Below, piece by piece: positions 17,795 to 56,682 of a stretch of 64,000 nucleotides of DNA. The notes below the pieces were generated by a model. It had not been told where the DNA came from, did not search any database, and worked only from the letters and a program-made list of their open reading frames with translations. The first letter of the stretch is position 1. Every line of letters begins with the position of its first letter. Location of the stretch: the NCBI RefSeq assembly GCF_964204645.1, contig NC_134034.1, positions 13,033,062-13,097,061 of the forward strand, given 5' to 3'. A program made the translations under genes and the position numbers. Source of the DNA: Tubulanus polymorphus. Taxonomy: Eukaryota > Animalia > Nemertea.

Positions 17795-18021
17795 CATACA
17801 CTTCACGGTCTAAACCCTTGCGCCGCCTGGTATACACATACGTCACGGTATATCCTCGCGCCGCCTGGCATACACATACGTCACGGTAAATCCTCGCGCC
17901 GCCTGGCATACACATACGTCACGGTAATTCCTCGCGCCGCCTGGCATACATACGTCACGGTATATTTCCTCGCGACGCCTGGCATACACATACGTCACGG
18001 TATATTCCCTCGCGCCGCCTG
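17795..18021. repeat. About 38-bp tandem repeat (about 6 units) overlapping the GPCR stop codon
   Basis: cgccgcctggcatacacatacgtcacggtatatcctcg units. Confidence 0.9.
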
Positions 18022-25081: not shown

Positions 25082-25454
25082 GCGCACGGTACATGCGAAA
25101 TAAAGCCACTAGAAATCATAGATTTTCATTAGTGTAAAACAACTGCTGCTCTAGATCGATTAGAATACTCGCCGATATAAAAAAACCCGTCAGGCGACAG
25201 TTGACACAATACACACGCGCACTGAAATACTTATAATAACAATACATGTATTCGCTGCTATTTTCATGATACATAAATAGATAAACGATGTGAGTTGAAT
25301 ATATGGTTATGCATAAACGGGTTCCATAAACGGGTTATTTGAATCTATGTATTTCTCATGATCAAGTATAGGGATTATGTCAAATTACATTGCAACTGCG
25401 CCGAGGCATGCACAGAGATGGCTAAACATTAAAATACCATTGAAGTTTTTTTAT

Positions 25455-25822
25455 TTATCTTGCATACATTATGATATTATAAAAAAATCTAACTGGAAAA
25501 AAGCGGTCACAATCACCACATTTTGACCGATCGGAGCTGGCTTCTTGGACGAAAGGAAGAAATCGTTTCTCCTTGCCTGACGCTGCCAGCGTAACCGCCC
25601 AGATGGAAACGAGTATTACTCTAATAGCAAACTTGGCTAACTGGTCTGAAAAAATGACGAATGAAACAGTTATGGAAATACGGATAAAGATAGCGCGAAA
25701 TCGAATATGAATTTAGTTTTGAAATGACCTCGATTCGTAATTCTTTTCGTATGCAGATCCCGACCCCAATGCAGTAGCAAGTGGGAAAATTGCGGATATT
25801 AAGAAATCTAATACCTACCCAT
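25455..25822 (-). CDS. Small secreted peptide precursor, copy B: MDQLAKFAIRVILVSIWAVTLAASG-KEKR-FLPFVQEASSDRSKCGDCDRFFPVRFFYNIIMYAR
   Basis: ATG-G (25822-25819)|gtaggt intron...ttttcag|exon 25645-25455; upstream non-coding exon ends at 26491 (gtaagt donor). Confidence 0.7.
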
Positions 25823-27327
25823 TGATTACGACCAAGATGAACGGAATGAATTGAAGTGAATCCTATGGAAATGAAATACAACATTGTTATCAAAATCTAT
25901 TTTCATTCCTTCATATTCTGGACCCAGTTCCACAGTTGTGAGTTAGAGTTAACTCTGAGTTAAAGCTAGTTCATTGCTCGGAACTGTGGAACTGGACCCT
26001 GTAGCTGACATCCGACGAAAATTCAACAAATATAGATATTTAAGGATACACAATTATTGATACCTTGTTTCTCCTTTTTGGGTCTGAGCTTAAAAGTTAG
26101 CCTAACCGGCCGTCTATCTATAACTACGTAAATTACTTGTTTTTTAAATCATGATCAAGCTTACAATAACAGACCCGACAGTTATAGAAATGAACTGATT
26201 ACAAATTTTATTGGAGTTTATTTACAAAAGTGACCCGGCCGATCAGGAAAAACAATGTATCATTTCCTTAGCCTAACAAGTTTGATATGTATCTAGGACG
26301 CTATTAAACGTCAAGTTTTAGTTAGCGTGAGGAATGAGGTTTTCATCCAACTTTGACTGCTAACGCCATCATTGATTACACAATATTCACCAGAACACTT
26401 TGGAATGGCGATCGACTTCGTGTTCAGGACTTCACTGAGACAATTTTTGAATGAACTTCATCAGGCATAGTGTAACGTATAATAACTTACTGCGGGTTGT
26501 CCTGCGAGGTTCCTCGGTTGTTCCTTGTGATCCGATCACTGGAATTAGTGAACTATACGTAATGAGAACTAACTATGTATGGGAACTATACAAAGCACTT
26601 CGAAAACGAGACATTATCGATCATCCGATTCATGAAGATGAATTTTTGTCGGAGTCAAATTTCAGTTACCAGAGAGTGCAGAGTGCACGATCGATCACGT
26701 GCCGTATGATATCTGATATGATATTTCTCAATTCTGAATTTGTTCAATAGAATATTCTATCATTATTTGTCTATCATCTAATATAACACATAGGTGAGTC
26801 TTCTGGATCTATCATCATTCTAAAACTACATTGGAATAAGTTTTACCCAGAAACGGGCTCTCTGGTACCACATTTTGGGCCAGCCATTACCACGTGGTCT
26901 CTCAAGCGGTACCATACTAGTTGGATATGGAAAAATGCATCCGAGTCTTACATTATGATTGAATACATGGTTGGAAGATGTAGGTAAATTGGAAAACTGC
27001 CGGGTAAAAAAGAAAAGGAAAGCATCTGATTGGCTAGACGAATAGACTGGTGGCCGCTGAGTGGCATCTTGTCCGGGCGCAACCTGAGGCGGCGTAATAG
27101 ACCAACGAGGGGAGGAGTCTGCGGCCAGGGTTCGGCCATGATACATAAATAGATAAACGATGTGAGTTGAATATATGGTTATACATGAAGCGAGTTCCAT
27201 AAACGGGTTATTTGAATCTACGTATTTCTCATGATCAAGTATAGGGATTATGTCAAATTACATTGCAACTGCGCCGAGGCATGCACAGAGATGGCTAAAC
27301 GTTAAAATACCATTGAAGTTTTTTTAT

Positions 27328-27673
27328 TTATATTGGATACATTATGACATTATAAAAAAATACCACATTTTGACCGATCGGAGCTGGCTTCTGCAGGCCG
27401 AAAGGAAGAAATCGTTTCTCCTTGCCTGACGCTGCCAGCGTAACCGCCCAGATGGAAACCAGTATTACTCTAATAGCAAACTTGGCTAACTGGTCTGAAA
27501 AAAATGACGAATGAAACAGTTATGGAAATACGGATTAAGATAGCGCGAAATTGAATATGAATTTAGTTTTGAAATGATCTCGATTCGTAATTCTTTTCGT
27601 ATGCAGATCCCCGACCCCAATGCAGTAGCAAGTGGGAAAATTGCGGATATTAAGAAATCTAATACCTACCCAT
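27328..27673 (-). CDS. Small secreted peptide precursor, copy C: MDQLAKFAIRVILVSIWAVTLAASG-KEKR-FLPFGLQKPAPIGQNVVFFYNVIMYPI
   Basis: ATG-G (27673-27670)|gtaggt...cag|exon 27494-27328; non-coding exon ends at 28378; tandem duplicate of copy B. Confidence 0.7.
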
Positions 27674-27769
27674 TGATTACGACCAAGATGAACGGAATGA
27701 ATTGAAGTGAATCCTATGGAAATGAAATACAACATTGTTATCAAAATCTATTTTCATTCCTTCATATTC

Positions 27770-27882
27770 TGGACCCAGTTCCACAGTTGTGAGTTAGAGT
27801 TAACTCTGAGTTAAAGCTAGTTCATTTTCGATGAGTTAACTCGGAGTTAAATCTTAACTCGGAACTGTGGAACTGGACCCTG
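27770..27882. mobile_element. MITE with GGNCCCAGTTCCACAGTT ends (copies at 25918-26001, internally deleted, and at 52868-52981)
   Basis: cccagttccacagtt...aactgtggaactggaccc with an internal gagttaactc palindrome. Confidence 0.75.
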
Positions 27883-29884
27883 TAGCTGACATCCGACGAA
27901 AAGTCAACAAATATAGATATTTAAGGATACACAATTATTGATACCTTGTTTCTCCTTTTTGGGTCTGAGCTTAAAAGTTAGCCTAGCTGGCCCGTCTATC
28001 TATAACTACGTAAATTACTTGTTTTTTAAATCATGATCAAGCTTACAATAACAGACCCGACAGTTATAGAAATGAACTGATTACAAATTTTATTGGAGTT
28101 TATTTACAAAAGTGACCCGGCCGATCAGGAAAAACAATGTATCATTTCCTTAGCCTAATAAGTTTGATATGTATCTACTAGGACGCTATTAAACGTCAAG
28201 TTTTAGTTAGCGTGAGGAATGAGGTTTTCATCCAACTTTGACTGCTATAGCGCTATCATAAATTACACAATATTCACCAGAACACTTTGGAATGGCGATC
28301 GACTTCGTATTCAGGACTTCACTGAGACAATTTTTGAATGAACTTCATCAGGCGTAGTGTAACGTATAATAACTTACTGCGGGTTGTCCTGCGAGGTTCC
28401 TCGGTTGTTCCTTGTGATCCGATCACTGGAATTAGTGAACTATACGTAATGAGAACTAACTATGTATGGGAACTATACGAAGCACTTCGAAAACGAGACG
28501 TTATTGATCATCCGATTCGTGAAGATGATTTTTTGTCGGAGTCAAATTTCAGTTACCAGAGTGCAGAGTGCACGATCGATCACGTGCCGTATGATATCTG
28601 ATATGATATTTCTCAATTCTGAATTTGTTCAATAGAATATTCTATCATCATTTGTCTATCATCTAATATAACATATAGGTGAGTCTTCTGGATCTATCAT
28701 CATTCTAAAACTACATTGGAATAAGTTTTACCTCGAAACGGGCTCTCTGGTACCACATTTTGGGCCGGCCATAACCACGGGTCTCCCAGGCGGTACCATA
28801 CTAGTTGGATATGGTAAAATGCATCTAAGTCTAACATTATGATTGAATACATGGTTGGAAGATGTAGGTTAATTGGATAACTGCCGGGTAAAAAAAAAGG
28901 AACGCATCTGATTGGCTAGACGAATAGACTGGTGGCCGCTGAGTGGCATCTTGTCCGGGCGCAACCTTGGGCGGCGTTATAGACCAACGAGGGGGGAGGG
29001 GGGGGTCTGCGGCCAGGGTTTGTGTTCGCATTAGCATTGGCATGCCCGGTCAACTGGAGTTAACTGATCAAATTGTGACAACTGGTCAACTCCAGATATT
29101 TGCTCGCGTTCAAAAGTCCGCTTATGGTTCCGTGCAAAAATCATTTACTGGAAACAAAGTCTATGTAGTACGTATCTTAAAGAGAAACGTTTTTCAAAAT
29201 AGTATTTATTACTCTACCAGAGTATGCAAGTGCTGGAGGTTGATATAAATAATTACACACATTTAGGAATGCTCGTTCGCGCCGCAAAGTGCTGTCTAAA
29301 AGCCCTGAGAGTCCTCTAACGAAATCCGTCTGAAAATATGCAACAAAATATGTTTGTCGATGCCTCTTTCGTCTCACCAGCCCTCTGAGACAATTGACAG
29401 AATTGAGAAATATATATACGATACTGGTTACTGAAATTCGTGCTCGAAAAATCATCTTCGTATTTGATAATAGCGAATTCACTTTCACGCGTTAACCATA
29501 GTTAGATTTATGGAGAGTTATCGATCTACACTCTAGTCCATCCACCCATCAGGTAATTGAGAAATAAATATATATCAAATATCATTCCGGAATCGTGTAC
29601 TTCACACTCGGGTAAATGAAATTTGAAGCCGAAATCGATTTATGAAGATGATTTCGGCTTCAAATTTCATTTACCCGAGTGTACGGGTATAGATATCTCA
29701 TTATACTTTCACTAATCGCATTGAACGGATCGCCGCCGCGCACAGAAGCCGAGGAACCTCGCAAGACCGAACCGTAAGACCACCTTTTTGGCTGTTGTGA
29801 TTTATACTTTTCATCGAAAATGTCTCTGAACATCGTCTGGACGTTCGCTATTTTAGAGTGTTTTCATAAATTGTAAATTCTTTG

Positions 29885-31696: not shown

Positions 31697-32694
31697 TTTC
31701 TGACGCAGCAAAATGACGCGAGAACGAGTAGGATGTGGAGCCTGGAGATTGAATACGATGTTATCAAAGTCAATGTAATTCTTCATATTCTGTTTTTTAT
31801 ACTGATAACGAATATATTGAAGTTCGATATAGGCTCTTAAAACTACACCCCAAAATTGTGCGATTCCTTAATTGTCATTCGCTAATTTGTCACCTGAAAA
31901 TGAACTGATCAACACTTTGAAATAGACAATTTATTTGACACTCTTTAAAACAGCGACCTCACGTGTGTTCAGAGCTTTGTCATAGACATTTTCTGATTGG
32001 AAATAAACTAAAACAGACATAAGACATAAAGTATCGTCACACATTTACTGACGGTTTTGTCATGCGAGGTTCCTCGGCTGCCGTTCAGTATAAAGTATAC
32101 AAAAATTCATATTGAAAATGAAGCACTTCCGTTGTTCGATCATCGATTCATAAGAATGATTTTTTGGATACAAATTTCAGTAACCCGATTGCAGAATACA
32201 CGATCGCCTGGTACGATATACGATAAGTATCATTCTGTATGACGCGTAATTTCTCTTATTTCACAACAGCAGTGAACTGAACATAACCAGGCTCATAACT
32301 CCCAGTCACAGTCAAGGCGGTTGATATAAATGATTTGACATTTAGGAATGCTATTTAACACGACCCGATCGCCACCGAAAAGGCGACGCTATGAAATATG
32401 TACTGTGAAATAAAAACAATTCCTAGGTTCTCGTTAAGAAGACGTAGATCTTCGCTAGATCGAGTTAAATAGCCGATACAAAAATACCCCAGAGTCAACA
32501 GGCGATACAATATTTACACTGGAATTTCAGACACCTTTATTCGTTATTATAACATATAGATACAGAATGATCGCTAAATACATTGTTACGCATGGAACAA
32601 GTTATTTAATGGGTTATTTGAATCTATATCTTAAATAACTAAAAATTCAGGGCGAGTTATCGATTTTTAACTTGTTGAGAATTCGCTGCCGAAA

Positions 32695-33123
32695 TTATAG
32701 GACCGATCCTCTTTTCCTTACGGTGAGTGGCATCGCCCAGCCGGCTGCGAGCGGCATCACCCAGATGCAAACGAATATTGCGCAGACATTTATAGCGACT
32801 TTGGCTAACCAGCCTAAAAAAGGAAATAAGAATGAGTGAAAATACTATCAAAAATTCGTTTGAGAAACTGCTCAGTTTGTCATTTTGTGCACGTCACATG
32901 AACAGCACGAGCTGTAGTCTATCTTCAGTACTTTATCGAACTGTTAATCCAATGATGTATTTGTTCCACATTGCGGACTAATTAAGTTAATCTGAATTCG
33001 AATTTGGTAAAAAGCGAACATTTCATCTTTACTATTTATAATGGAACTTAATGGAATCAAATTATGTTTATTGAAATTTTTGGCCGAGTAGAGAATAAAA
33101 AACCAAACATTCGACTTACTCAT
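32695..33123 (-). CDS. Peptide-precursor copy F, frameshifted: MSWLAKVAINVCAIFVCIWVMPLAAGWAMPLTV-RKR-GSVL (ancestral frame KEKR-IGPIISAANSQQVKNR)
   Basis: ATG-A 33123-33120|gtaagt; exon from 32813. A 20-nt duplication-derived insert precedes aaggaaaagagg and shifts the frame. Possibly a pseudogene. Confidence 0.6.
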
Positions 33124-34996: not shown

Positions 34997-36249
34997 GAGG
35001 CTTCATCGAGTGTTCAGAGCTTCATCAGAGACATTTTCAATTGAAAATGAACTTCAAGACATTCGACTTATTCACATTTACTTACGGTTGTGTCCTGCGA
35101 GGTTCTGCGGCTGCTGTGTGTGATCCGTTCACAGCGATTCGTGAAAGTACATAATGAGAAATTCATATCGAAAACGAAGCACTTCGGAAGTTAGATCATC
35201 GATTCATGCAGTTGATTTTTTTGGTATCATGTCATGATATCTATTTCTCAATTCTGAATTTGATCGATAAAACATCCGAGATCCGTTTCGGATTACGTGC
35301 CTATCTATTACATAAGTATGATATCTGATATTTCTGAAAACTGAATTTGTTCGATAAAACACTTACAATTCTATCATCCATTATAACATACGTGAGTCGT
35401 CTGGATCATCTGCATTCTGTTTAGTTTCTGAATTGTTGTCCTTATCGAAATCATGATGTCATAAGCAATAATTGAAGCTAAGCTTTAAATGATACTGTTG
35501 ATATTACCTGTTTTATATAGTATCAGCATATAATTGATGAGTAAACTATGTGTGAGAATATGTAAAGAAATGGTTCTAGCAAGGAAATTTAAGCTAAAAA
35601 CGTTACGTATACCACGGGTCTAAAATCGTATCGATGTGGATTATCTTGTAATAATTTACTGAATGAAACTTTTCCTGGGATAAATCAGTCATTCATGGAA
35701 ATTATATCGATATCTGGAGTAGAAAAATGAATCAATTTTTTATTCGACAGGTCCTGTGATGATATATGGATTCGGGAGTCGAAAAATCCCGATCTAATTT
35801 TGACAACGTATAAAACCAACACGGCTTATCACGTCATCACGATGTGAATTGCTCACGATACCAGTTACACGGTGATTTCGACGCTTATAGTTTATCAAAA
35901 TGTCATCAAGTAGAACCAGCCTATAAAAGGCTCGCAAAACACAATGTTTCATACAAATATAACATACTCATGTCACCGTTACCTCGTAAGGACGCCCTTT
36001 CAATATAGATGCAAACATATTCAATTGTTTTTCGTTAGAATTTGAGTTACTACCTCGGTACTTGAGAGGGATGTTATATCAACAGTTAATATATCTTCAA
36101 GTCATTTCTTAAATCAGTACAGTAAGAACAGTATACGAAATGCAGCCACTAGAAATCCTAGATTCTCATTAAAACGACTGAGCTAAATCGTTTGTCGCTT
36201 CGTCTTTTGGCTTACTCTGGTCGCTTTAGACAACGGATTCTACAAAGTC

Positions 36250-36410
36250 TCATTTCATTTTCAGACGAAGTCCCACCATGAGCCCTGGCGAACTTTGGCG
36301 CGCTATATGGTTGACTAGGAAAATCCTGCTTAGCTTGCCTCGAGTATTACCATCCAGATGGAAGCAAGTAATACACTGATATGCAGAGTAACTTTGACCG
36401 ACGATTTACC
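36250..36410 (-). pseudogene. Degenerate relic of the peptide-precursor coding exon (J)
   Basis: Reads ..VKVTLHISVLLASIWMVILEAS*, homologous to the family signal peptide (tccatctgg core); the KEKR region is partly deleted. Confidence 0.55.
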
Positions 36411-36924
36411 GGCATTGCCGAAAAAATACCGAAACTGCCCTTTACGAAATTCATCGAAAATATGTGACAGAATACGTTCGCGCATGCGCCTCGTCTCGTG
36501 ATCTACTCTCTGGGGAAAATCGTGGTCGAGACCAATAAAAAACTGCTCCTACGATACCACGGTGTGATTTGACATATGTACGCTTTTAAACACGTACCGT
36601 TTATAATTGTATGAAATAAAGCCACAAGAAATCCTAGGATCCCCATTGAAACGACTGGGCTAAATCAATTCGAATCCTAGCCAATATTAAACCTTCAAGA
36701 CAATAGTCGACAAAATATATGCACTGGAATGACAATTACTTTATTCTTTGTTATAACATATAGATACAATTACATCGTTACAGATAGAACAAGATGTTTA
36801 TTGGGTTATTTGAATCTATGTCTTATAAACAAAATTGTATCGCAAACTATGAAGGTAAGCAGTGGTGGCTAATTTACATTAGTATAGCCAATCTAACACT
36901 GTTTAGAAAGAGTTATCATTATGC

Positions 36925-37409
36925 TTAGCCTCGACTCATGACATAACGTCGCAAATAGTTAGAAAAAAAAAACCTATCAAAACGCTTTTCCTTGCCTGCT
37001 GCGAGCGTCACAAACCAGAGGAAAATAAGGAATATCGCGTTAAATTGTGCGGCAAATTTGGTTAACTGTCCTGAAAAGGAAAGAAAATACTACAAGTAGA
37101 TTCATAGAAATAGGATGTCAGAATTTCATTTTGAAATGCTACCGATACGGGACACATAAGCAAAGATACTGCTCATTACGCCCATCCCGTATATGCGCTT
37201 AAAACGATTAAGAGAATTGACAGTGAAAACTGGATTTACTTCATTTTACACGCAAAAACTATATGATAAGATACAGACAGTTTAACGATTAACAAATACA
37301 ATCTATAGATGAAATACGTTCAGCAATTATACATGAATTTCCTATATATCCTCCCCTACTATACTACTCCATATAAGCAAAAACGACTAAATATGTACTT
37401 ACCAAACAT
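36925..37409 (-). CDS. Small secreted peptide precursor, copy H: MFGQLTKFAAQFNAIFLIFLWFVTLAAG-KEKR-FDRFFFSNYLRRYVMSR-G* (predicted amidated)
   Basis: ATG-TTT-G 37409-37403|gtaagt; ttttcag|exon 37070-36925; non-coding exon donor near 37816; TATAAA-like element near 37885. Confidence 0.8.
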
Positions 37410-39489
37410 TTTACCTCTGGTAAGACACCCGAAAAGTGAGTCGAATATGGCGAATTGAGGCCTAGGAAGAAAGATAATACAACATTGTATTCAAAGTCTA
37501 TAATACTCCTTCATATTCTATGACTGACACTTCTCAAAAAACACAGTTATCATTCACGTATACGACTCATAAATGTATCAAAGCTTGATATATAGCTAGG
37601 ATTGTGAGTGATGTTTTCACCATCGGAGTTAGATAATTTTGCAATTTCCAATTTGACATTGTTTATTGAAAATGAACTTCGAACAGCATTAAATAGACAT
37701 TTCATGTACACACTTTAAAACAGCGACTAGCGTTCACAGCTTCATCAGAGACATTTTCAATTGGAGATAAACTAAAACAGACATTCTACCTAAAGTATCA
37801 GCGGACATTTACTTACGGATTTGTACTGCGAGGTTCCTCGGCTGCTGCGCGCGATCCGTTCACTGCAATCGAATTATGAGAACTTTATATTGAAAAACGA
37901 AGCACTTCGGAAACGAGACATTGTTTGATCATCGATTCGTGAAGTTGATTTCAATCGGATTCGAATTTCTGTTAGCCGAGTGCAGAGTGCACGACCACGT
38001 AAAGTATGATATACGATATTTCTCAATTCTGAATTTGATCAATAAAACACATATAATTCTATAACCTATTATTACATGAATCATCTACATTCAACATTCT
38101 AAAACTGTAATGGAAGTTTTATTCTAAGCTACACAAAGCATAAACACGTTTTTCGTTGCCATATTTTGGACCGGCCACTATCCCCAGATCTTCCGACCGG
38201 TTCCACAAGTCTTAAATAAAGTAAAACTGATTTGAGGTTAGATATCTTGTAATAGTTGAATGCAGGGGTGGACTATGAAAATTGGAAGACTGCCGGGGTC
38301 TGAAAGACGATCGAGTAAGGACCTGACACGGATAAAGCAGCCATGTTGAAGGTATGGCAGACTGAGGTTGTGTAATCGGGATTAGACATCACTGAAGCCG
38401 CTCCATCCGACGAAGAGATGCAGTTTCCGACAGAATCAGTTTGAAATATATTTATTTTAACAAACTCTGTTTTAATGAAAATGGCATCTCCAAAATCGCT
38501 CCGTATAGCTGCCCCTGGAATTATAGACCATTCTCATATTTTACCATTCTTCGGCTGGCAAATTCTGCTAAGATTATGGTTATTGTGGAGCTAGGGTTAA
38601 GGATATGGCTGCCCAATGAGTAGCAACTGAAGCTGTGGTTGGGACTTATTCTTGGGCTGGTGGCGTGTTTTTGGTAGCTCGAAGTTCTTGGTGATTGATG
38701 AGCCTGGCCATAGGGTTAGTGAGTTGACTGGTCACCATCTGTGAGTGGATTTATCGATTACAATTTTCCAATCAGTTAATTCCCCGGCGCCTGGTTCAGG
38801 TCGAAAACGCACTTCCGTATAATTTTTTCAGTAATAAGAAAATAAGTAACAAAACGTTTTCTCAGAAATTCTTATCAGTGATTATGCTGAAAGATTTTCG
38901 AAAACTTTCATCCAAAAGAATAGCAAATGTCTTCTTGTCTCACAGGCATCAGAGTCGGGTTATTTTCTAAGGTCTTAATTATGCCTCATTGAACTGAGTG
39001 AAATCACTGAGTAAAATCGGATCCCGCCTCGCTTGCCATAGTCTATTATCAAGCCGCTGTTCCTTGAACAAGTAGTGGTAAATGTAACTTAGTCGAATAC
39101 GCGGGCGGACCTAGGAAAATTGGAAGACCGCCGCGTTCAGAGAGAAAAGGAAGGTCATTACTCAAAAGCCGCCAAGCCGAAAGGTAGCAGAAACCTATCA
39201 TCGGGTTAAGACATCTAGTTTTCTAAGATCGGTATAAGATAACAGATTAAGTCAGGATCAACCGACCCAACTGACTGAGGATAGAACCGTTTAATTCGTA
39301 CATGAAAAAAAAAACCAAATGTGAAGAGGATTGTTTTTGAAAAGCCGCGATCGCACGAGCTGCTACTGATAAAGTGAGATATCCTTACCTTGATTAACGT
39401 TACCATCACTACGACTACCATCACAACATTTTTGTCGCTTCGTCTTTTGGCTTACTCTGGTCGCTTTAGACAACGGATTCTACAAAGTC

Positions 39490-39655
39490 TCATTTCATTT
39501 TCAGACGAAGTCCCACCATGAGCCCTGGCGAACTTTGGCGCGCGATATGGTTGACTAGGAAAATCCTGCTTTTCCTTAGCTTGCCTCGAGTATTACCATC
39601 CAGATGGAAGCAAGTAATACACTGATATGCAGAGTAACTTTGACCGACGATTTAC
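39490..39655 (-). pseudogene. Degenerate relic of the peptide-precursor coding exon (K), duplicate of J
   Basis: ..VKVTLHISVLLASIWMVILEAS* followed out of frame by aag gaa aag c agg (KEK/R). Confidence 0.6.
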
Positions 39656-40165
39656 CGGCATTGCCGAAAAAATACCGAAACTGCCCTTTACGAAATTCAT
39701 CGAAAATATGTGACAGAATACGTTCGCGCATGCGCCTCGTCTCGTGATCTACTCTCTGGGGAAAATCGTGGTCGAGACCAATAAAAAACTGCTCCTACCA
39801 CGGTGTGATTTGACATATGTACGCTTTTAAACACGTACCGTTTATAATTGTATGAAATAAAGCCACAAGAAATCATAGGATACCCATTGAAACGACTGGG
39901 CTAAATCAATTCGAATCCTAGCCAATATTAAACCTTCAAGACAATAGTCGACAAAATATATGCACTGGAATGACAATTACTTTATTTTTTGTTATAACAT
40001 ATAGATACAATTACATCGTTACAGATAGAACAAGATGTTTATTGGGTTATTTGAATCTATGTCTTATAAACAAAATTGTATCGCAAACTATGAAGGTAAG
40101 CAGTGGTGGCTAATTTACATTATTACAGCCAATCTAACACTGTTTAGAAAGAGTTATCATTATGC

Positions 40166-40650
40166 TTAGCCTCGACTCATGAAAAAACGTTGAAAAAAGT
40201 TAGAAAAAAAAAACCTATCAAAACGCTTTTCCTTGCCTGCTGCGAGCGTCACAAACCAGAGGAAAATAAGGAATATCGCGTTAAATTGTGCGGCAAATTT
40301 GGTTAACTGTCCTGAAAAGGAAAGAAAATACTACAAGTAGATTCATAGAAATAGGATGTCAGAATTTCATTTTGAAATACTACCGATACGGGACACATAA
40401 GCAAAGATACTGCTCATTACGCCCATCCCGTATATGCGCTTAAAACGATTAAGAGAATTGACAGTGAAAACTGGATTTACTTCATTTTACACGCAAAAAC
40501 TATATGATAAAATACAGACAGTTTAACGATTAACAAATACAATCTATAGATGAAATACGTTCAGCAATTATACATGAATTTCCTATATATCCTCCCCTAC
40601 TATACTACTCCATATAACCAAAAACGACTAAATATGTACTTACCAAACAT
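40166..40650 (-). CDS. Small secreted peptide precursor, copy I: MFGQLTKFAAQFNAIFLIFLWFVTLAAG-KEKR-FDRFFFSNFFQRFFMSR-G* (predicted amidated)
   Basis: ATG-TTT-G 40650-40644|gtaagt; exon 40311-40166; duplicate of H. Confidence 0.8.
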
Positions 40651-42495
40651 TTTACCTTTGGTAAGACACCCGTAAAGTGAGTCGAATATGGCGAATTGAG
40701 GCCTAGGAAGAAAGATAATACAACATTGTATTCAAAGTCTATAATACTCCTTCATATTCTATGACTGACACTTCTCAAAAAACATCAGTTATCATTCACG
40801 TATACGACTCATAAATGTATCAAAGCTTGATATATAGCTAGGATTGTGAGTGATGTTTTCACCATCGGAGTTAGATAATTTTGCAATTTCCAATTTGACA
40901 TTGTTTATTGAAAATGAACTTCGAACAGCATTAAATAGACATTTCATGTACACACTTTAAAACAGCGACTAGCGTTCACAGCTTCATCAGAGACATTTTC
41001 AATTGGAGATAAACTAAAACAGACATTCTACCTAAAGTATCAGCGGACATTTACTTACGGTTTTGTACTGCGAGGTTCCTCGGCTGCTGCGCGTGGTCCG
41101 TTCACTGCAATCGAATTATGAGAACTTTATATCGAAAAACGAAGCACTTCGGAAACGAGACATTGTTTGATCATCGATTCGTGAAGTTGATTTCAATCGG
41201 ATTCGAATTTCTGTTAGCCGAGTGCAGAGTGCACGACCACGTAAAGTATGATATACGATATTTCTCAATTCTGAATTTGATCAATAAAACACATATAATT
41301 CTATAACCTATTATTACATGAATCATCTACATCCTAAATTCTAAAACTGTAATGGAAGTTTTATTCTAAGCTACACAAAGCATAAACACGTTTTTCGTTG
41401 CCATATTTTGGACCGGCCACTATCCCCAGATCTTCCGACCGGTTCCACAAGTCTTAAATAAAGTAAAACTGATTTGAGGTTAGATATCTTGTAATAGTTG
41501 AATGCAGGGGTGGACTATGAATATTGGAAGACTGCCGGGGTCTGAAAGACCGAGTAAGGACCTGACACGGATAAAGCAGCCATGTTGAAGGTATGGCAGA
41601 CTGAGGTTGTGTAATCGGGATTCAGACATCACTGAAGCCGCTCCATCCGACGAAGAGATGCAGTTTCCGACAGAATCAGTTTGAAATATATTTATTTTAA
41701 CAAACTCTGAAATGAAAAGGGCATCTTCAAATCGCTCCGTATAGCTGCCCCTGGAATTATAGACCATTCTCATATTTTACCATTCTTCGGCTGGCAAACC
41801 GAATTCTTCTGCTAAGATTATGGTTATTGTGGAGCTAGGGTTAAGGATATGGCTGCCCAATTAGCAACTGAAGCTGTGGTTGGGACTTATTCTTGGGCCG
41901 GTGGCGTGTTTTTGGTAGCTCGAAGTTCCTGGTGATTGATGAGCCTGGTATAGGATTAGTGAGTTGAATGGTCACCATCTGTGAGTGGATTTCGATCGAT
42001 TACAATTTTTCCAATCAGTTTTAATTCCCCGGCGCCTGGTTCAGGTCGAAAACGCACTTCCGTATAATTTTTTCAGTAATAAGAAAATAAGTAACAAAAC
42101 GTTTTCTCAGAAATTCTTATCAGTGATTATGCTGAAAGATTTTCGAAAACTTTCATCCAAAAGAATAGCAAATGTCTTCTTGTCTCACAGGCATCAGAGT
42201 CGGGTTATTTTCTAAGGTCTTAATTATGCCTCATTGAACTGAGTGAAATCACTGAGTGAAATCGGATCCCGCCTCGCTTGCTATAGTCTATTATCAAGCC
42301 GCTGTTCCTTGAACAAGTACTGGTAAATGTAAGAAGGTCTGGTATTCAGACTTCGCTTGCCATGGCACGATGCCGCTGCCGTTAAAGCCACATCCTTTGG
42401 CAAGCGAGTATGACTAATATACGTTCCGACGCGTAACTTTCGGTTCTTAGTACGACCGGGTCGCGCTAGCTTCGATTGAGTCATAACTAGCGAAG

Positions 42496-45400
42496 ATGGC
42501 GGAAGAAAGCGCCGATCGAGTTCAATTGGCGAACGGTAATTACAACTCTACAGGTCAGTGATTATCAATTTACCGAATTTATTTTCATTCGGAGTTTATC
42601 GTCGAACGTCGAGAAAAATTTCCGCTCCGAAATCGCTTTGGAACCCGGAGTTTCCGATGAGAGAACGAAGTATTAGCTTAGTCTGTGTCTACTCCTTCCG
42701 AATATGATTTTTAGCTAATTAGTCGAATTCTTCGATGATTACCCGTTGATAATTTTACCCTTTTCTTCCCGACCCGTTCCTGAATCATTCGAGTACCTAA
42801 ATCTTAGAAATTAATGCCTAAACGTCCTGAGACTTTCAGGGGCGGACAATGAATGGGAATGCCTCATCATTCATGGGAGGGTCCGCCTCCCGACCATCCC
42901 AAAAAAGTCAAGATGCCCTGAAATTTCACGGGAAAATATAAATGATGGATTGATATCTAAAAATGTTGACATTCATAAGCTTGTTCTCTATATTTTCAAA
43001 AGTGAGTTAATATTTTCCGGAGCGAGGTTGCTTTCAGGGTGCCATTTTAATTGATCCCCTATTTTGGGGGGGTTTTACCCTCCCTGATTCGAACCCTAGA
43101 TCCGCCCCTGATAATCAGGCCTAATTACTGAGTGTCATGATATACAAGATCAAAACTGAATCCTGGTTGCTGACTACAATGCAATGCGGTCGATTATTTA
43201 AGTCGTACAGTCCACAGTGTAGTCCGATTACTGACTAAAAACTACGGTCCAGTTACTGACTGAATGATAGTCTGGCTACTGACTAAATTCAATGTCTCTA
43301 GGTTACTGACTCCTGCTTGTTCTAAAGTGCCGTCTCCTATGATACATGTTTCTTTGATTCAGTTGTTTAGAATATGTAGTGGCCAGTCACCCCCCCCCCA
43401 AAAAAAAAAAAATCAAGTGGCTATTCATACGGACACGTATGGATTACTCTGGAATTATTCGTAGGGTTAGGGTTAGGGTAAGGTGAGGCTATATGTAGTT
43501 AAAACATTCGATCGACTGTCAGCGAGCTCGATGGTCTAGTGGTATGATGCTGCGCTAGTAATTTACTGGCGCGGGTTCCAGTCTCGCTCGATCCGCTATT
43601 TTTCTCTAACTATATTCTCCGCGCTTTCCTTGAATTTTCTAAGTCGCGCACCTCTGTACGCATGCGTGGCGTCCAATCAGCGACAGTTATTAGCGTACAG
43701 ATCCTAGTTCCGTACGAGTAGCCTCCTGAGTAATCCCCGTACGGGTAGCTTCCAGAGTAATCCCCGTACGGGTCTGTACGGGTAGGTTCCAGAGTAATCC
43801 CCGTACGAGTAGCCTCCAGAGTAATCCCCGTACCGGTAGCCTCCAGAGTAATCCCCATACGGGTAGCCTCCAGAGTGATCCCCGTACGGGTAGCCACAGC
43901 GTTTAGAATATTATTGATTCTCAGGTTTCAGGAAGGATAGAAAGAGAAATTTTAATGGTAAGTCTCGAAATGTGTTATGGATGATTTTTATTTTGCCATT
44001 AGATCAAACGGATTGATTATTTTTATTTGTTCATTTGTTTGCTTGAACATTTTCATTTACGTTATTTAGTTTAGTTTTGGAGGTTTTTTGTTTTGGATGT
44101 GTTTCATTTCATCTTAATTGCACGTTGTTTATCATAGAATTTTCATATTTGATCTTTTAACGCAATAATTGTAAAACATTAAGAGCTTTGAAATCTGTAG
44201 ATAGCATAGAGACACATCCTATTCAAACCAGGAAGCTGACAGAGTCATGATGTTACCGGGTTCAAATTCCTGTCTGACTCTCATGATGTCAAATCCCTGT
44301 GAGGGAGGATGTGTCTACTAGGACAGGTGTTTGTACTGTGACAGAGTCTCATGATGTCATCAGGTTCAAATCCCTGTGAGGGAGGATGTGTCTAGTAGGA
44401 CAGGGGTTTGTACTGTGACAGAGTCTCATGATGTCATCAGGTTCAAATCCCTGTGAGGGAGGATGTGTCTACTAGGACAGGGGTTTGTACTGTGACAGAG
44501 TCTCATAATGTCATCAGGTTCAAATCCCTGTGAGGGAGGATGTGTCTACTAGGACAGGGGTTTGTACTGTGACAGAGTCTCGTGATGTCATCAGGTTCAA
44601 ATCCCTGTGAGGGAGGATGTGTCTACTAGGACAGTGGTTTGTACTGTGACAGAGTCTCGTGATGTCATCAGGTTCAAATCCCTGTGAGGGAGGATGTGTC
44701 TACTAGGACAGTGGTTTGTACTGTGACAGAGTCTCGTGATGTCATCAGGTTTAAATCCCTGTGAGGGAGGATGTGTCTACTAGGGCAGGGGTTTGTACTG
44801 TGACAGAGTCTCGTGATGTCATCAGGTTCAAATCCCTGTGAGGGAGGATGTGTCTAGTAGGACAGGGGTTTGTACTGTGACAGAGTCTCATGGATGTCAT
44901 CAGGTTCAAATCCCTGTGAGGGAGGATGTGTCTAGTAGGACAGGGGTTTGTACTGTGACAGAGTCTCACGATGTCATCAGGTTCAAATCCCTGTGAGGGA
45001 GGATGTGTCTACTAGGACAGGGGTTTGTACTGTGACAGAGTCTCGCGATGTCATCAGGTTCAAATCCCTGTGAGGGAGGATGTGTCTACTAGGACAGGGG
45101 TTTGTACTGTGACAGAGTCTCGTGATGTCATCAGGTTCAAATCCCTGTGAGGGAGGATGTGTCTACTAGGACAGGGGTTTGTACTGTGACAGAGTCTCGT
45201 GATGTCATCAGGTTCAAATCCTTGTGAGGGAGGATGTGTCTACTAGGACAGTGGTTTGTACTGTGACAGAGTCTCGTGATGTCATCAGGTTCAAATCCTT
45301 GTGAGGGAGGATGTGTCTACTAGGACAGGGGTTTGTACTGTGCCAGAGTCTCGTGATGTCATCAGGTTCAAATCCCTGTGAGGGAGGATGTGTCTACTAG

Positions 45401-46615
45401 GACAGGGGTTTTATCCTGATGAATAACCCTAACAGCCACAAGTTGATGATTGGGTTTGATATAATGAATTGTGATTATTTCATGACTGGGTGTACGTACT
45501 TGAATGTGAATCATCATCAGGTGTTTGAATTAACTATTGATTCAACGTTTTTCAAGTTGTGCGTATATGTAACCTCAATTTAAAGTACTTATGTCACGGG
45601 TTTGTTTGACTGCCAGGAAACGTCAAGTGCGTGTGTGTAATAAATCAGCGTCCCTTGGTTGCTTATAAACTGCTAAACAGAAAATGATTTTAAAGCTGCT
45701 TGAATTTGAGTAAATTGCCCGAAACACTTTCAATTTTGAGAATTAGGCTATTATAAGAAATCTTTTAAATCAGACTGCGCCTAAGTCGGTACAGTTAGGA
45801 CCGGGATATTTTTTTCGTTATAAGGTGGTTACTGAATTGAAAAAACCGAGTTTAGGTCGTGTAAGGGATAAAACTGTGCTCACAAAACCACCGAATTACT
45901 GGTTCGGCACTGATTTTATTATAGTTAACCTAGTACAGCTTAATCAGGATGATTCAGTTCACAGACCGAGTAAGGACGATGTACTTAACAGTTTCATACC
46001 GGAATTAGTCTCGGATAAAAAATGTTTCTGATCCAAAAATACTGGTAAATTGACATAATATATTAGACGCGGTATATTGTCAGTGATGTATTTATAGCCT
46101 GATGCTGAGTGGAGCTTGTCGATTTGATTCTAGTGCTTCTGATGCATTGTAAACGAAAGACTTGCTGTCATTTCTCATGTATAGAGGGAATGCGCAATTT
46201 TTCGCAGTGATAAATTTAAGGATATTCCTATAGAACTAATATGGAAAATACATTAAACTACGAGTTGACAGGTAGGATTTGTTCATGAATTTGATCAGTT
46301 TAAAGGGATGTATTTGTCAGGTGGGGGGTGAACCGATGATCGGAGACAATAGATTCCCGGGGGGGAAGGGGGGATAAACGGAGTCTACTGCGGATGCATA
46401 AAGAACAATTCAAAGATATTCGATATAATTCTTAAGCGTTCGTTCAGACACAGCTGTTGCTGTACGGGATGATGTTCTCTTATTCGATACCGTATTTCAT
46501 GAACGTCAAATCCGCGACATATGTTACACGTATTGTAAAACATGAAATGGCGTCCAATCCTGGTAAGGAGGCGATTTAACATTATCTCTTTTTCACTGTT
46601 CTACTAATGCCTTCA

Positions 46616-49700: not shown

Positions 49701-52700
49701 ACAAACATTGAATTGCTATACTGAATACGTTTTCATAATGAATATCAAAACTACAATTGTCTCGTAATGTCGGCCATCTTACCTATATGGCTGCCATGCG
49801 GCCGTATTGAATTTTGCATTGTCGCGTTCGTATTTCAGAAATGTAGACGAGAACTGTGCGAACAGTTGAGCGGTAATTTCACGGAACTCGTCGACGAGAT
49901 TATCACGCAAGTCGAGGATATCGAAGAGACGCGCGATGCCGCTGGTGCCGAACGACGGCGTAAACGAGGCAAAAACGGCGAACTTCCCGATAAGGAATTC
50001 GTATCGCGGCAATCTATACTGACGTACGTTTTTAGTATTCAATTTTACTTTAAGATTCTACTTGTGTCGCGTCGTTAGACATATTTAATTGAAAATGAAC
50101 TACAAACGTCGGATATTAGACATTTTATCAGCACACTTTCAAAAACTGATCGTCCACACTTCACATGTGTTCAGTGCTTCACCTGAGATATTTTCAATTG
50201 AAAATGAACTACAAACAACAGACATTAGATATTTCATAAGTTTCTTGAATGTGTGCTGATAAAATCTTAGAACTTCGGAACTTTATCCGTAGACATTATC
50301 GCGAATCAACTATCCTACGTGAACTGAATATTTAACGAAGTAACGGTTAATTAGGATTTCGGGTTTTAATTGTTTTCACCCTCGATTAATTGTTTATTTT
50401 ATTAATTGTTTTTTGTTTTTCTATTCTCAGCGAGCTGCTCGAAATTGATCATATACGAACGATATATCACATCTTCGTCGCGATTCTGATCGTTTTCTCT
50501 CTGAACACGGTCGTCTACGACATCTTTGAAAACGGTCTGAAGTAAGTATTCGATGAAACGTCTCGTGTTGCCTCGCCGTGTGACGTGTTTCGTTCCGCGT
50601 GATTTTATCGGTAATCTATAATAATAATAATAATAATGAATTTTTAAATTCGTACAGCTAAGTACAACGCTCATTGAGCAGAACAAAAAAATATACAATA
50701 TACAAATTATAACCTGATGAAAAAGTACATAGCATAAGTATAGTAAATCAGTATAAATATATGATATAAAATTGCCAGCACAGCACTTTTTAGTGAAATG
50801 ATTTCACTGTTCGTAAATTGAAAATTTGGGTCATTCTTAATTTCAAGTAATGGTGGCTGATTCGATAAAACTGTGTTTTATCATGCATTAAACTTTTTTC
50901 GCGTTTTATCGCGGTGATTTTCATTTTTACCCCCCCCCCCCCCTCCGGTCTTTTTTGTTGTGTGGGGCGATACGACGAAAAGAATTCGTAATTTTAGGCG
51001 TTCATTAAAAATTGCAATGCGTGTGACTTTTTTAAGTTTATTTTTACATGGCCCGAATCAGCTACTAAAGTAATCAGTTGATATCGTTATATTAGGGTCA
51101 CCTAACCTGGACAACTCGGAAAACTCTAGAAATCTATCATAAATTTCGATGTTTTCTTGTATTTTTCAGACCGGACCTGTTTAATTTCGAAGTGATTGTT
51201 TGGGGTTTCGGTAAATTGCCGATAGTGATGACGATATGGGTGTGTATGCTTCTGGCTAATACTGTAGTATTGTATCCGCTATTCCAACATTGGGCATGGA
51301 ACCGACCGAAGAAAGTTGGTATGTTCTATTTTTCAAAGGCTCGTAACGTGAATGAATACTATGATTGCACTTGGTTGATCCTCACTTGCTGCAAGTGGAA
51401 TCCTCTATTGCCACGGTAGTTGATGTCCTACAGCATACTAGCGACACCTGGTGGATCCTCACTTGCTGCAAGTGGAATCCTCTATTGCCACGGTAGTTGA
51501 TGTCCTACAGCATACTAGTGCCACCTGGTGGATCCTCACTTGCCGCAAGTGGAATCCTCTATTGCCACGGTAGTTGATGTCCTACAGCACACTAGCGACA
51601 CCTGGTGGATCCTCACTTGCCGCAAGTGGCATCCTCTATTGCCACAGTAGTTGATGTCCTACAGCACACTAGCGACACTTGGTGGATCCTCACTTGCTGC
51701 AAGTGGAATCCTCTATTGCCACGGTAGTTGATGTCCTACAGCATACTAGCGACACCTGGTGGATCCTCACTTGCTGCAAGTGGAATCCTCTATTGCCACG
51801 GTAGTTGATGTCCTACAGCACACTAGCGACACCTGGTGGATCCTCACTTGCCGCAAGTGGAATCCTCTATTGCCACGGTAGTTGATGTCCTACAGCACAC
51901 TAGCGACACCTGGTGGATCCTCACTTGCCACAAGTGGAATCCTCTATTGCCACGGTAGTTGATGTCCTACAGCACACTAGCGACACCTGGATCCTCACTT
52001 GCTGCAAGTGGCATCCTCTATTGCCACGGTAGTTGTATCCTACTGCTCTCCTCGCTAGCGACACCTGGTGGATCCTCACTTGCCACGCGAGAGATACCCT
52101 CGCTTGCCGCAGTGTTGTTGCCAATTCCTCTCCGAGTTTGGGAAGGAACTGCAACCCTATCACCCCTGGCGTTGGTGCCTCAGAGAGGGTATCATTGATA
52201 CTGATTTCTGAAGAAACGATGTGCATTGTTATATTTTAGGTTACTATGACTACGTGTATTTGGCTCTTTACATCGCGTATATTTTGGCGTTTTTGATTCT
52301 TCCCGTGATCACGTCATTTCAACATCAACTGCCGATTGCGTCGAAACTGATCGCCATTCTTGAACAGGTTAGCTAGAGTGGATACTAATCAAGCATTCTA
52401 AAAATTCTGAAAACTATGACCGGTGATGTGTGTCGAGAAGTGTCCGTCAAAATAGCTGAGAATTTATGCACAAACTTTGTTCAAGTATAAGAAAGTTTAT
52501 TTTCATCTGTTATTTTGTCGTGAAAAATGCCGATATTGTCAGGATAGGAAAAAGTGAAAATTCCAGAGTTCATCAATCTGGCCCCTGGGTCGAGTTAAGT
52601 TATTGGTAAAGTTTCTCTAATGCGCTGCTTTAATGATTTAATGTTTCATTCGTAGGTTCGTTTGATAATGAAAGCTCACGCGTTCGTAAGATACAACATT

Positions 52701-55700: not shown

Positions 55701-56682
55701 TAGTACGGAAAACTTATTTCATTTTATCCATAAAAGCGATACCAATAGTTACTGTATTACGCATAAGAGTTTTTTATCGGTATCTCTTCTATGCGTACGT
55801 CGATAGCTGAACTCCCTTCCTGAAGATTTATTTCATTTTTATCGTCGTTCTATTGCAGTCGGTTTAGCGTTCATTAGCGATAAAGCTAACAGACGTATCG
55901 GGAACATTATGATGTGGGTAATGTTATTCTCCGGAACCGGAACATTGTTTGCCCTATATTCCATGGAGTGGTACGCTCGGCGGAACTGTCCGGCTATTTC
56001 TGTAAGTAGTGCGTCGTTGTAGGCATTTATTTTCTGCAGGCGACACAATTTAATACTACCCTTTTCAGATATTCAGGATTGTGTGAAATGTGTACGATCA
56101 GTCTTTGAAATTTTGCTGATAAAATGTCAGATGCCTGGGGTTATATCTATCGATAATGTCTCAGATGAAGTACTACTGAACGCATGTTACGCGTAAATGA
56201 TCAGTTTTCCATCAGTAAGCTGATATAATGTCTCATGTCTAGTGTTTCGAGTTCATTTTCAATCAGAAATGTCTCAGATGAAGCACTGAACACATGTGAA
56301 GTGTGGACGATCAGTTTTTGAAAGTGTGCTGATAAAATGTCTAATGTCTGGTGTTTGTAGTTCATTTTCAATCAAAAATGTCTCAGGTGAAGTACTGAAC
56401 ACATGTGAAGTGTGGACGATCAGTTTTTGAAAGTGTGCTGATAAAATGTCTAATGTCTGGTGTTTGCAGTTCATTTTCAATCAAAAATGTCTCGGGTGAA
56501 ATCCCGAACACCTTTGAAATGTGGACGATCAGTTTTTGAAAGTGTTCCGATAAAATGCTTTTTACGGCGTCAGAATACGGAGTTAACGTTGAATGTATTC
56601 GGTATTCTCTTCTTTTCAGGATAATTGGTTATTGAACGAGTTGATTCCGCATTCGTGGTTTTGCGGCGTGAAATTCAACTGA
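42496..56682 (+). CDS. SOAT1: Sterol O-acyltransferase (ACAT/SOAT, MBOAT family)
   Basis: Exons about 42496-42535 (or -42553), 43925-43957, 49320-49387, 49839-50023, 50431-50541, 51170-51318, 52240-52367, 52656-52731, 53173-53272, 53533-53729, 54276-54451, 55251-55386, 55859-56001, 56620-56682. Motifs [81 protein letters not shown]. The first two exons are less certain. Confidence 0.93.
43417..43897. mobile_element. Non-autonomous element with GTGGCTA..TAGCCAC inverted ends, (TTAGGG)n patch, degenerate tRNA-like segment (about 43524-43595) and 27-bp subterminal repeats
   Basis: gtggctattcatacgg vs ccgtacgggtagccac; gggttagggttaggg at about 43465; tggtctagtggtatgat A-box; tccagagtaatccccgtacgggtagcc repeats at 43710-43895. 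Confidence 0.5.
44240..45410. repeat. 77-bp satellite, about 15 copies, each with a Pol III B-box-like GGTTCAAATCC (SOAT intron)
   Basis: Unit starts at 44341, 44418, 44495, and so on. Confidence 0.95.
46618..46707. repeat. (TA)n microsatellite
   Basis: Direct reading of the sequence. Confidence 0.98.
51377..52090. repeat. 77-bp satellite, about 9 copies (SOAT intron), unrelated in sequence to the 44.2 kb array
   Basis: gatcctcacttgc... unit starts at 51377, 51454, 51531, and so on. Confidence 0.95.
53774..54220. mobile_element. piggyBac-like non-autonomous element with internal duplication; diverged relative at about 57000-57520
   Basis: TTAA-CCCTTTCAGTGC...GCACTGAAAGGG-TTAA. Confidence 0.8.
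54517..54951. mobile_element. Foldback/MITE with about 130-bp imperfect terminal inverted repeats
   Basis: tctaatgtccatttattaatggatgaga...tctcatccattaataaatggacattaga; the inner arms also pair. Confidence 0.8.
56070..56560. repeat. About 119-bp tandem repeat; inverted copy at about 50085-50240; related segments in the first introns of the peptide genes
   Basis: ctgaacacatgtgaagtgtggacgatcagtttttgaaagtgtgctgataaaatgtc...gttcattttcaat units. Confidence 0.8.

Follow-up and report, generated by a model that had tools for sequence, protein, structure and literature searches.

A cluster of five amino acid replacements in the mature peptide of two tandem micro-genes of the ribbon worm Tubulanus polymorphus

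Two tandem copies of a small prepropeptide gene

The window analysed in this study is a stretch of 64,000 nucleotides (nt) from the genome of the nemertean Tubulanus polymorphus (NC_134034.1, positions 13,033,062 to 13,097,061); all positions given below are those of the whole window. Self-BLAST and MAFFT alignment revealed that it contains a single long duplicate pair (36191-39087 versus 39431-42332), and that each of the two units carries one small gene, designated H and I, respectively, on the minus strand. Both look like intact three-exon micro-genes, each encoding a prepropeptide of 50 amino acids, and their predicted mature peptides differ by five replacements that are crowded into 15 nt, well above the divergence of the surrounding DNA.

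Across 2881 ungapped aligned nt there are 35 substitutions between the two units, together with 13 indels; the units are offset by 3240-3245 nt and separated by a non-homologous spacer of 343 nt. H and I are tandem paralogs of recent origin, about 1.2% diverged and both intact, in agreement with the initial annotation of this DNA, which had described them as tandem duplicates with sparse differences. The components of the units are as follows (splice sites are marked by a slash):

36191-39087, minus strand: duplicate unit H, whole gene and flanks (97.5% identity with 39431-42332 and 89.6% with the dispersed paralog J, see below)
39431-42332, minus strand: duplicate unit I (aligned with unit H and with J; bridged to H by a short-read contig, see below)
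37884-37889, minus strand: putative TATA box (TATAAA) of H, read from the sequence, inside a block conserved among family members
41126-41131, minus strand: TATA box counterpart in I
37817-37864, minus strand: putative exon 1 of H, a 5' untranslated region (UTR) with no ATG, ending in ACAAATCC/GTAAGT; its start is placed by the spacing from the TATA box
about 41059-41106, minus strand: putative exon 1 of I, counterpart of the H exon
37403-37461, minus strand: exon 2 of H (acceptor TTCCTAG/, 5' UTR, ATGTTTG/GTAAGT; ATG at 37407-37409; phase-1 donor)
40644-40702, minus strand: exon 2 of I (ATG at 40648-40650)
36925-37070, minus strand: terminal exon 3 of H, with the remainder of the signal peptide (KEKR at 36982-36993; mature peptide and Gly at 36928-36981; TAA stop at 36925-36927)
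40166-40311, minus strand: terminal exon 3 of I (KEKR at 40223-40234; mature peptide and Gly at 40169-40222; stop at 40166-40168)
36797-36802, minus strand: putative polyadenylation-type signal (AATAAA) of H, read from the sequence, about 125 nt past the stop
40038-40043, minus strand: AATAAA counterpart in I

In both genes the start-codon micro-exon reads AAAATGTTTG/GTAAGT. No in-frame ATG is present inside the terminal exon of H or I, which in each unit is preceded by the acceptor ttccttttcag. The phase-1 donor of exon 2 is compatible with the "GA" at the start of the terminal exon, and the joined reading frame (M-F-G-Q-L-T-K) comprises 50 residues. The arrangement of the TATA box, exons and splice sites in I is identical to that in H, and the ATG, the GT-AG sites, the TATA box and the AATAAA are retained in both copies.

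The predicted precursor consists of three parts: (i) a signal peptide (MFGQLTKF...VTLAAG), (ii) a four-residue KEKR convertase site, and (iii) a 17-residue mature peptide. Judged by rule, the n-region of the signal peptide (MFG followed by QLTKFAAQFNAIFLIFLWFVTLAAG) is basic, its hydrophobic core spans 14 residues, and positions -3/-1 are occupied by small residues (A, G). The mature 17-mers are Cys-free, rich in Arg and aromatic residues, and cationic (side-chain charge of +2/+3). As the initial annotation stated, both translations end in Gly-stop, and the mature peptides are probably converted to Arg-amides by processing of this Gly. Proteins of the corresponding enzyme classes are encoded in the genome, at family level only: there are 29 exon matches to PF01082 (Cu2 monooxygenase, PHM/DBH family) and 8 matches to PF01483 (proprotein-convertase P domain). 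The possibility that the peptides form amphipathic helices was also considered and found to be unsupported, their low helical hydrophobic moment (0.10-0.11) arguing against a classical amphipathic helix. The suggestion in the initial annotation of a membrane-active or self-assembling peptide is conjectural.

Read mapping covered 6000 nt of the window and was performed with short-read (Logan) contigs (X1) and with raw Illumina reads from another sample and study (X4). A 403-nt X1 contig (39058-39460, record 3) runs from the H unit across the spacer into the I unit. A loose X1 end at 39431 turned out to be the left flank of H itself (36161-36190), and thus the left junction of H is carried by a contig as well. 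The word depth of X1 was 57-86 where H and I are identical (collapsed) and 25-40 in the unique spacer. Over the bins that hold the replacement cluster it was 25 (H) and 32 (I), i.e. about half of that in the collapsed stretches and similar to that in the spacer, and no alternative letters were seen at any of the five cluster sites. At position 36885 the sole X1 contig reads C, the letter of copy I, where the assembly of H has T, which may mean that the site is heterozygous or that the contig was mapped to the wrong copy.

Five replacements confined to the mature peptide

The differences between the mature peptides, and the homopolymer beside them, occupy the following positions:

36942-36956, minus strand: five-replacement substitution cluster, H side (YL.R.YV), from the H-I alignment
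40183-40197, minus strand: the same cluster, I side (FF.Q.FF)
36963-36972, minus strand: run of ten T on the gene strand (T10; codons FFF+S) in H, the sole run of at least 7 nt in the unit; its counterpart in I is at 40204-40213

The sites 36942, 36944, 36950, 36952 and 36956 of H correspond to 40183, 40185, 40191, 40193 and 40197 of I. On the gene strand the codon changes from H to I are TAT>TTT, TTG>TTT, CGA>CAA, TAT>TTT and GTC>TTC, and all five alter an amino acid downstream of KEKR. The mature tail of H is FDRFFFSNYLRRYVMSRG and that of I is FDRFFFSNFFQRFFMSRG, each followed by a stop codon. The differences closest to the cluster, at 36885 and 37138, are 57 and 182 nt distant from it. The codon changes (YLRRYV versus FFQRFF) are those reported in the initial annotation, whose coordinates for H (36943-36957) were one position off and should read 36942-36956. 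Further readings of the pair given there were accurate: the signal and KEKR codons are the same in H and I (no change across 89 nt, the coding part of the start-codon exon being identical too), and the translated tail of copy I contains 8 Phe among its 17 residues and has lost the internal RR (QR instead).

The comparison of substitution density between the mature region and its flanks revealed a significant excess by each of three tests. In a scan statistic, the observed maximum of 5 substitutions per 15 nt was reached in 0.046% of permutations in which the 35 substitutions were placed uniformly (P=4.6e-4). When the 54-nt mature-peptide region was chosen a priori, its 5 changes also stood out from the rest of the unit (Fisher P=4e-4). 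Finally, the mature part differs at 5 of 57 nt (8.8%) and non-exonic DNA at 23 of 2495 nt (0.92%; P=2.4e-4), while the signal and KEKR part shows 0% divergence and the introns 0-0.9%. The second densest H-I segment after the mature peptide is putative exon 1 (uncorrected P=0.018).

By the Nei-Gojobori count, the mature part contains 44 nonsynonymous (N) and 10 synonymous (S) sites, with five nonsynonymous differences (Nd=5) and no synonymous ones (Sd=0). The resulting proportion of nonsynonymous differences per site (pN=0.114) is about 12-fold above the non-exonic divergence (0.0092), which was used as a neutral proxy, so that the replacement rate of the mature peptide exceeds this proxy. With 10 S sites and none of them changed, the data offer no basis for a proper test of the ratio of nonsynonymous to synonymous substitution rates (dN/dS). 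At the flank rate about 0.1 synonymous changes would be expected in the mature part; their absence is what a divergence of 1% predicts.

A search of the whole genome (268 Mb, 77 contigs) showed that the family comprises seven copies clustered at 25-42 kb of the window (H, I, c25, c27, c30, c32 and c34) and the dispersed copy J. All seven clustered members have the start-codon micro-exon and the phase-1 intron: the micro-exon is of the form ATG+1 nt/GTAAG or GTAGG 5' of c25, c27, c30, c32 and c34, namely AATCAATGG/GTAGGT for c25 and c27, and AAAATGA/GTAAG for c30, c32 and c34. The prepro region is common to all members, and the mature parts are largely unalignable between subfamilies. KEKR is invariant in six paralogs, its codons varying synonymously only (AAG/AAA, GAA/GAG, and CGT/CGA/CGG/AGG for Arg), and the ratio of nonsynonymous to synonymous differences per site (pN/pS) in the signal and KEKR part is 0.2-0.7 among paralogs. 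The prepro part is under purifying selection while the mature part diverges, the pair H-I showing 0 prepro versus 5 mature changes. The Gly-stop ending (...MSRG-stop) is present only in H, I and J, i.e. in 3 of the 8 members, with a synonymous Gly codon in J (GGC/GGA), and Gly is not the last residue in the remaining five.

As judged from these comparisons, the family appears to be translated. The initial annotation had regarded the H/I cluster as the best evidence of translation. That place belongs to other features: the strongest internal evidence for translation and KEKR cleavage would be the synonymous-only variation of KEKR together with the prepro pN/pS, and the conserved micro-exon and phase-1 intron are likewise stronger than the cluster.

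Copy J (L013:6006-8566, equivalent to G000:C10:4066005-4068565, plus strand) is located 9 Mb away and shares 89.6% identity with H and I across a 2.5-kb alignment. In this copy, probably a pseudogene, ATA replaces ATG and KERR replaces KEKR. Its mature tail (FYTYPSNLYSSNLYINYLQRMIMSRG) carries a 24-nt insertion resembling an internal tandem repeat (SNLYSSNLY). The 2.5-kb H-J alignment is conserved in the signal part, at the end of the intron and in the 3' flank, and its most divergent 60-nt window is the mature region. The 230-nt flank upstream of unit I (42437-42666) and a segment upstream of J (L013:4537-4766) are 97.4% identical, well above the 89.6% of the units themselves, and may represent a conserved element or a young repeat.

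The tail of c25 and c27 (DRFFPVRFFYNIIMYAR) can also be aligned with those of H and I, and it was used as a more distant outgroup. With J and c25/c27 as outgroups, the changes Q>R and F>Y look H-derived, and at site 36942/40183 all three outgroups have A, from which both H and I differ. These placements suggest that changes fell on both lineages, and hence that more than one event was involved. A single multi-nucleotide event and a single conversion tract were rejected on this ground. Gene conversion from another paralog was rejected as well, since only H, I and J carry the tail genome-wide and the likeness of c25/c27 is confined to the T run. With regard to template switching at a palindrome or hairpin, inspection of the I version revealed only AACGTT as palindromic.

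A second pair of similar units within the cluster is formed by c25 and c27 (25265-27132 and 27137-29020; reading frames at 25455-25712 and 27328-27519, minus strand), which are 2.7% diverged. Their signal parts differ by one synonymous change, and their signal and KEKR residues are identical. Two indels, of 2 nt and 26 nt, distinguish the mature parts; as a consequence, about 30 nt common to both are translated in two frames until the shared C-terminus (FFYN[IV]IMY..) is reached. The mature parts carry further replacement changes as well. In c32 (32657-32893, minus strand) KEKR and the ATG micro-exon (33123) are kept, and the signal region is out of frame relative to c34; this member is probably a frameshifted pseudogene.

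Other features of the window include two long intronless open reading frames (ORFs) located 6-22 kb from the peptide gene cluster, both of which match peptide-type G protein-coupled receptor (GPCR) families: the first (3452-4495, plus strand) is Srw-like (E=9e-11), and the second (17995-19260, minus strand) matches rhodopsin 7tm_1 (E=1e-17). Downstream of the cluster there are two arrays of a 77-nt tandem repeat (44289-45411 and 51368-52083; 14.6 and 9.3 copies, 94-97% matches). By eye, part of intron 1 of the H, I and J genes (37690-37790 in H; AATGTCTCTGATGAAGCTGTGAAC...GTTCATTTTCAAT) looks similar to the 109-nt unit that is repeated in tandem at 56155-56557, and a dispersed repeat seems to lie within these genes.

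Selection, local mutation and other explanations

The explanation that we consider best, with a probability of roughly 0.5, is that H and I are young paralogs of a lineage-specific micro-gene family, the mature peptide of which has been diversified by selection on a secreted effector. After the duplication, the mature peptide alone would have taken five or six replacements, on both copies and at about ten times the non-coding rate, while the prepro part would have stayed identical. The most likely cause would be diversifying selection on the secreted effector peptide, which might resemble a defence peptide, a toxin or an antimicrobial, or be a rapidly evolving signal; a T-rich sequence context prone to mutation may also have played a part.

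Several observations weigh against this explanation. The mature peptides of H and I differ at five sites in total, and the comparison covers paralogs of one genome. The ratio of 5 N to 0 S changes has no power, since with 44 N and 10 S sites the probability of observing no synonymous change is about 0.36. Of the positive-selection signature proposed in the initial annotation, the excess over the flanks stands, and this ratio, taken by itself, is uninformative. Clusters similar to that in the mature peptide, a possible objection raised at the outset, do occur in the non-coding DNA of the duplicate in a mild form (4 gaps of at most 3 nt versus 0.9 expected, P=0.011), the densest holding no more than 3 substitutions per 15 nt and none reaching 5. 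Putative exon 1 shows 3 H-I substitutions in 46 nt (37817-37862 / 41059-41104; 6.5%). The polarity of the first two codons is ambiguous, J agreeing with H and c25/c27 with I. The T10 run, the only homopolymer of at least 7 nt in the 2.9-kb unit, lies 7 nt from the cluster, and all four changes apart from the Q/R site are to T in I, making three TTTTTTC repeats. Two possible RNA data sets (X5, X6) gave no contigs on the stretch, which is no proof of absence. The independent sample X4 is thin (about 1x on H and about 4x on I) and therefore indecisive as a confirmation of the two copies; for this the X1 contigs, which carry both versions and the tandem junction, are informative.

Some of these observations could be accommodated by a less probable alternative, i.e. 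that the cluster arose at a local mutational hotspot, by error-prone synthesis or template misalignment at T10 or by homogenisation of quasi-repeats to TTTTTTC, and not by selection. Such changes would be replacements only because about 80% of the sites in this region are nonsynonymous, which is in keeping with the uninformative N:S ratio. The adjoining T10 run is one point in its favour. In addition, the I version is a near-perfect triple repeat (TTTTTTC-TAAC-TTTTTTC-AACG-TTTTTTC-ATGA), two of its heptamers now being copies of a neighbour, and in four of the five changes T is gained or lost by transversion. Background clustering of substitutions (3 changes in 5 nt at 38091-38095) and the somewhat dense substitutions near the T7/A7 runs of c25/c27 (3-4 versus 1.8 expected) point the same way. 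However, the outgroups indicate changes on both lineages and a double hit at one site, which no single event would produce, and the non-coding clusters all remain at or below 3 per 15 nt. Moreover, H and I do not differ in the T10 run or in the codons on its 5' side, and the H-J alignment also diverges most in the region of the cluster, within a family whose mature part is hypervariable throughout behind a constrained prepro. The units offer no internal non-coding control for homopolymer-linked mutation: H and I have one long run, and both runs of c25/c27 are located in or beside the mature region. Because there are five changes beside a homopolymer, and the evidence consists of paralogs from the DNA of one genome, selection and a local hotspot are not separable here, and positive selection on the mature peptide is plausible but unproven.

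It appears improbable that one or both copies are unexpressed relics, in which the changes reflect the loss of constraint after duplication. Members of the family do decay (J with ATA for ATG, c32 with its frameshifted signal), the pair c25/c27 tolerates a compensated frameshift in the mature part, and the silence of the two RNA data sets would fit such a state. Against this, neutral decay predicts about 0.5 changes per 54 nt, about one-tenth of the 5 observed, and relaxed constraint alone is insufficient because a rate above neutral needs selection or a local excess of mutation. Both copies have also kept the start codon, the splice sites of both introns, the frame, KEKR and Gly-stop, and their 89-nt signal and KEKR part is without changes.

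Errors of assembly (in the consensus or in homopolymers, or by the tandem placement of two haplotypes) are a very unlikely explanation: the T-rich context is error-prone on some platforms, the X1 run may stem from the assembled individual and X4 is too thin to decide, but the differences are substitutions and not changes of run length, the X1 contigs on both bins carry no alternative letters at half the depth of collapsed stretches, contigs hold both the bridge between the units and the left junction of H, and X4 reads lie on both bins at a likeness of at least 97%.

More speculatively, mutation bias and diversifying selection may act jointly, the T-rich, homopolymer-flanked coding stretch serving as a built-in hotspot by which variation is concentrated in the mature peptide, and the family would be the first class of linear, amidated peptides of the defence type to be described in Nemertea; we regard this as a long shot. 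To our knowledge, such joint action has long been proposed for conotoxins and never shown.

If expression and processing are confirmed, the genes described here would add a new family of short secreted peptides, specific to its lineage, to those of Nemertea, the peptide arsenal of which is, as far as we know, represented almost only by cysteine-rich toxins, and the pair H/I would be so young that diversification is caught underway. The pair is a compact case for telling whether hypervariability of peptides stems from selection or from a local bias of mutation, and its two 17-mers are easy to synthesise for activity assays. If the peptides are not expressed, the finding would reduce to an ordinary small substitution cluster beside a homopolymer.

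Comparison with known peptide families

Relatives outside this genome were not found by word search, Pfam, Atlas (best score 0.76) or a profile search of 1.84 billion representatives with the terminal exon as query. Two profile matches (E about 4e-4) were rejected as repeat proteins matched via reiterated GKEK motifs. There was no match in the 27 supplementary files of a study of nemertean neuropeptides (PMC8557429), and no motif match in toxin-transcript tables that include T. polymorphus, a "VMSRG" match in these tables being rejected because it is inside an unrelated long protein. Our search of the literature for linear amidated defence peptides of nemerteans yielded none.

The combination of a conserved prepro region with a mature peptide that is hypervariable is known from frog skin peptides, conotoxins and the mussel MgCRP-I family (PMC7106915, PMC6245896, PMC10561478, PMC4558851). 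Sequence homology of H and I to these described families was not detected. By analogy, the pattern of H and I is one usual for toxin and defence peptides, although five changes cannot prove selection.

The amidated neuropeptide precursors of Bilateria (nemertean set, PMC8557429) resemble H and I in having (i) a signal peptide, (ii) a dibasic convertase site and (iii) a C-terminal Gly, and two ORFs for peptide-type GPCRs are present within 35 kb of H/I. In contrast to these precursors, H and I have one peptide copy per precursor, which is hypervariable between paralogs, orthologs were not found, and most members of the family are without Gly. The nemertean toxins (alpha-nemertides, parborlysins/cytotoxin A-III and neurotoxin B; PMC6410017) are likewise secreted ribbon-worm peptides, possibly defensive as the H/I peptides may be, but they are disulfide-rich and/or much longer, whereas the mature peptides of H and I lack their conserved cysteine framework and contain no Cys.

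The conotoxin superfamilies and mussel MgCRP-I (PMC10561478, PMC4558851) share with H and I a conserved pre-pro region, a hypervariable mature peptide and an organisation in multigene clusters, and they have been subject to the same debate on selection versus targeted mutation. They differ from H and I in that they are built on cysteine frameworks and have far longer precursors (50 amino acids in H and I), and there is no homology between them.

The host-defence precursors of anuran skin (temporin/brevinin/dermaseptin-type; PMC7106915, PMC6245896) show a similar layout: (i) a conserved signal region ending in Lys-Arg, (ii) a single short, linear, Cys-free and hypervariable mature peptide, in many cases ending in a Gly that donates the amide, and (iii) tandem gene duplicates with replacements focused on the mature part. 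They belong to a different phylum and show no sequence similarity to H and I, which have no acidic spacer (the whole propiece being KEKR), are split into three exons with a start-codon micro-exon and have a low helical amphipathicity, only 3 of the 8 members of their family ending in Gly. As far as can be judged from sequence comparison, the H/I family is an orphan analogue of the conserved-prepro/hypervariable-mature families, and not a homologous member of any of them.

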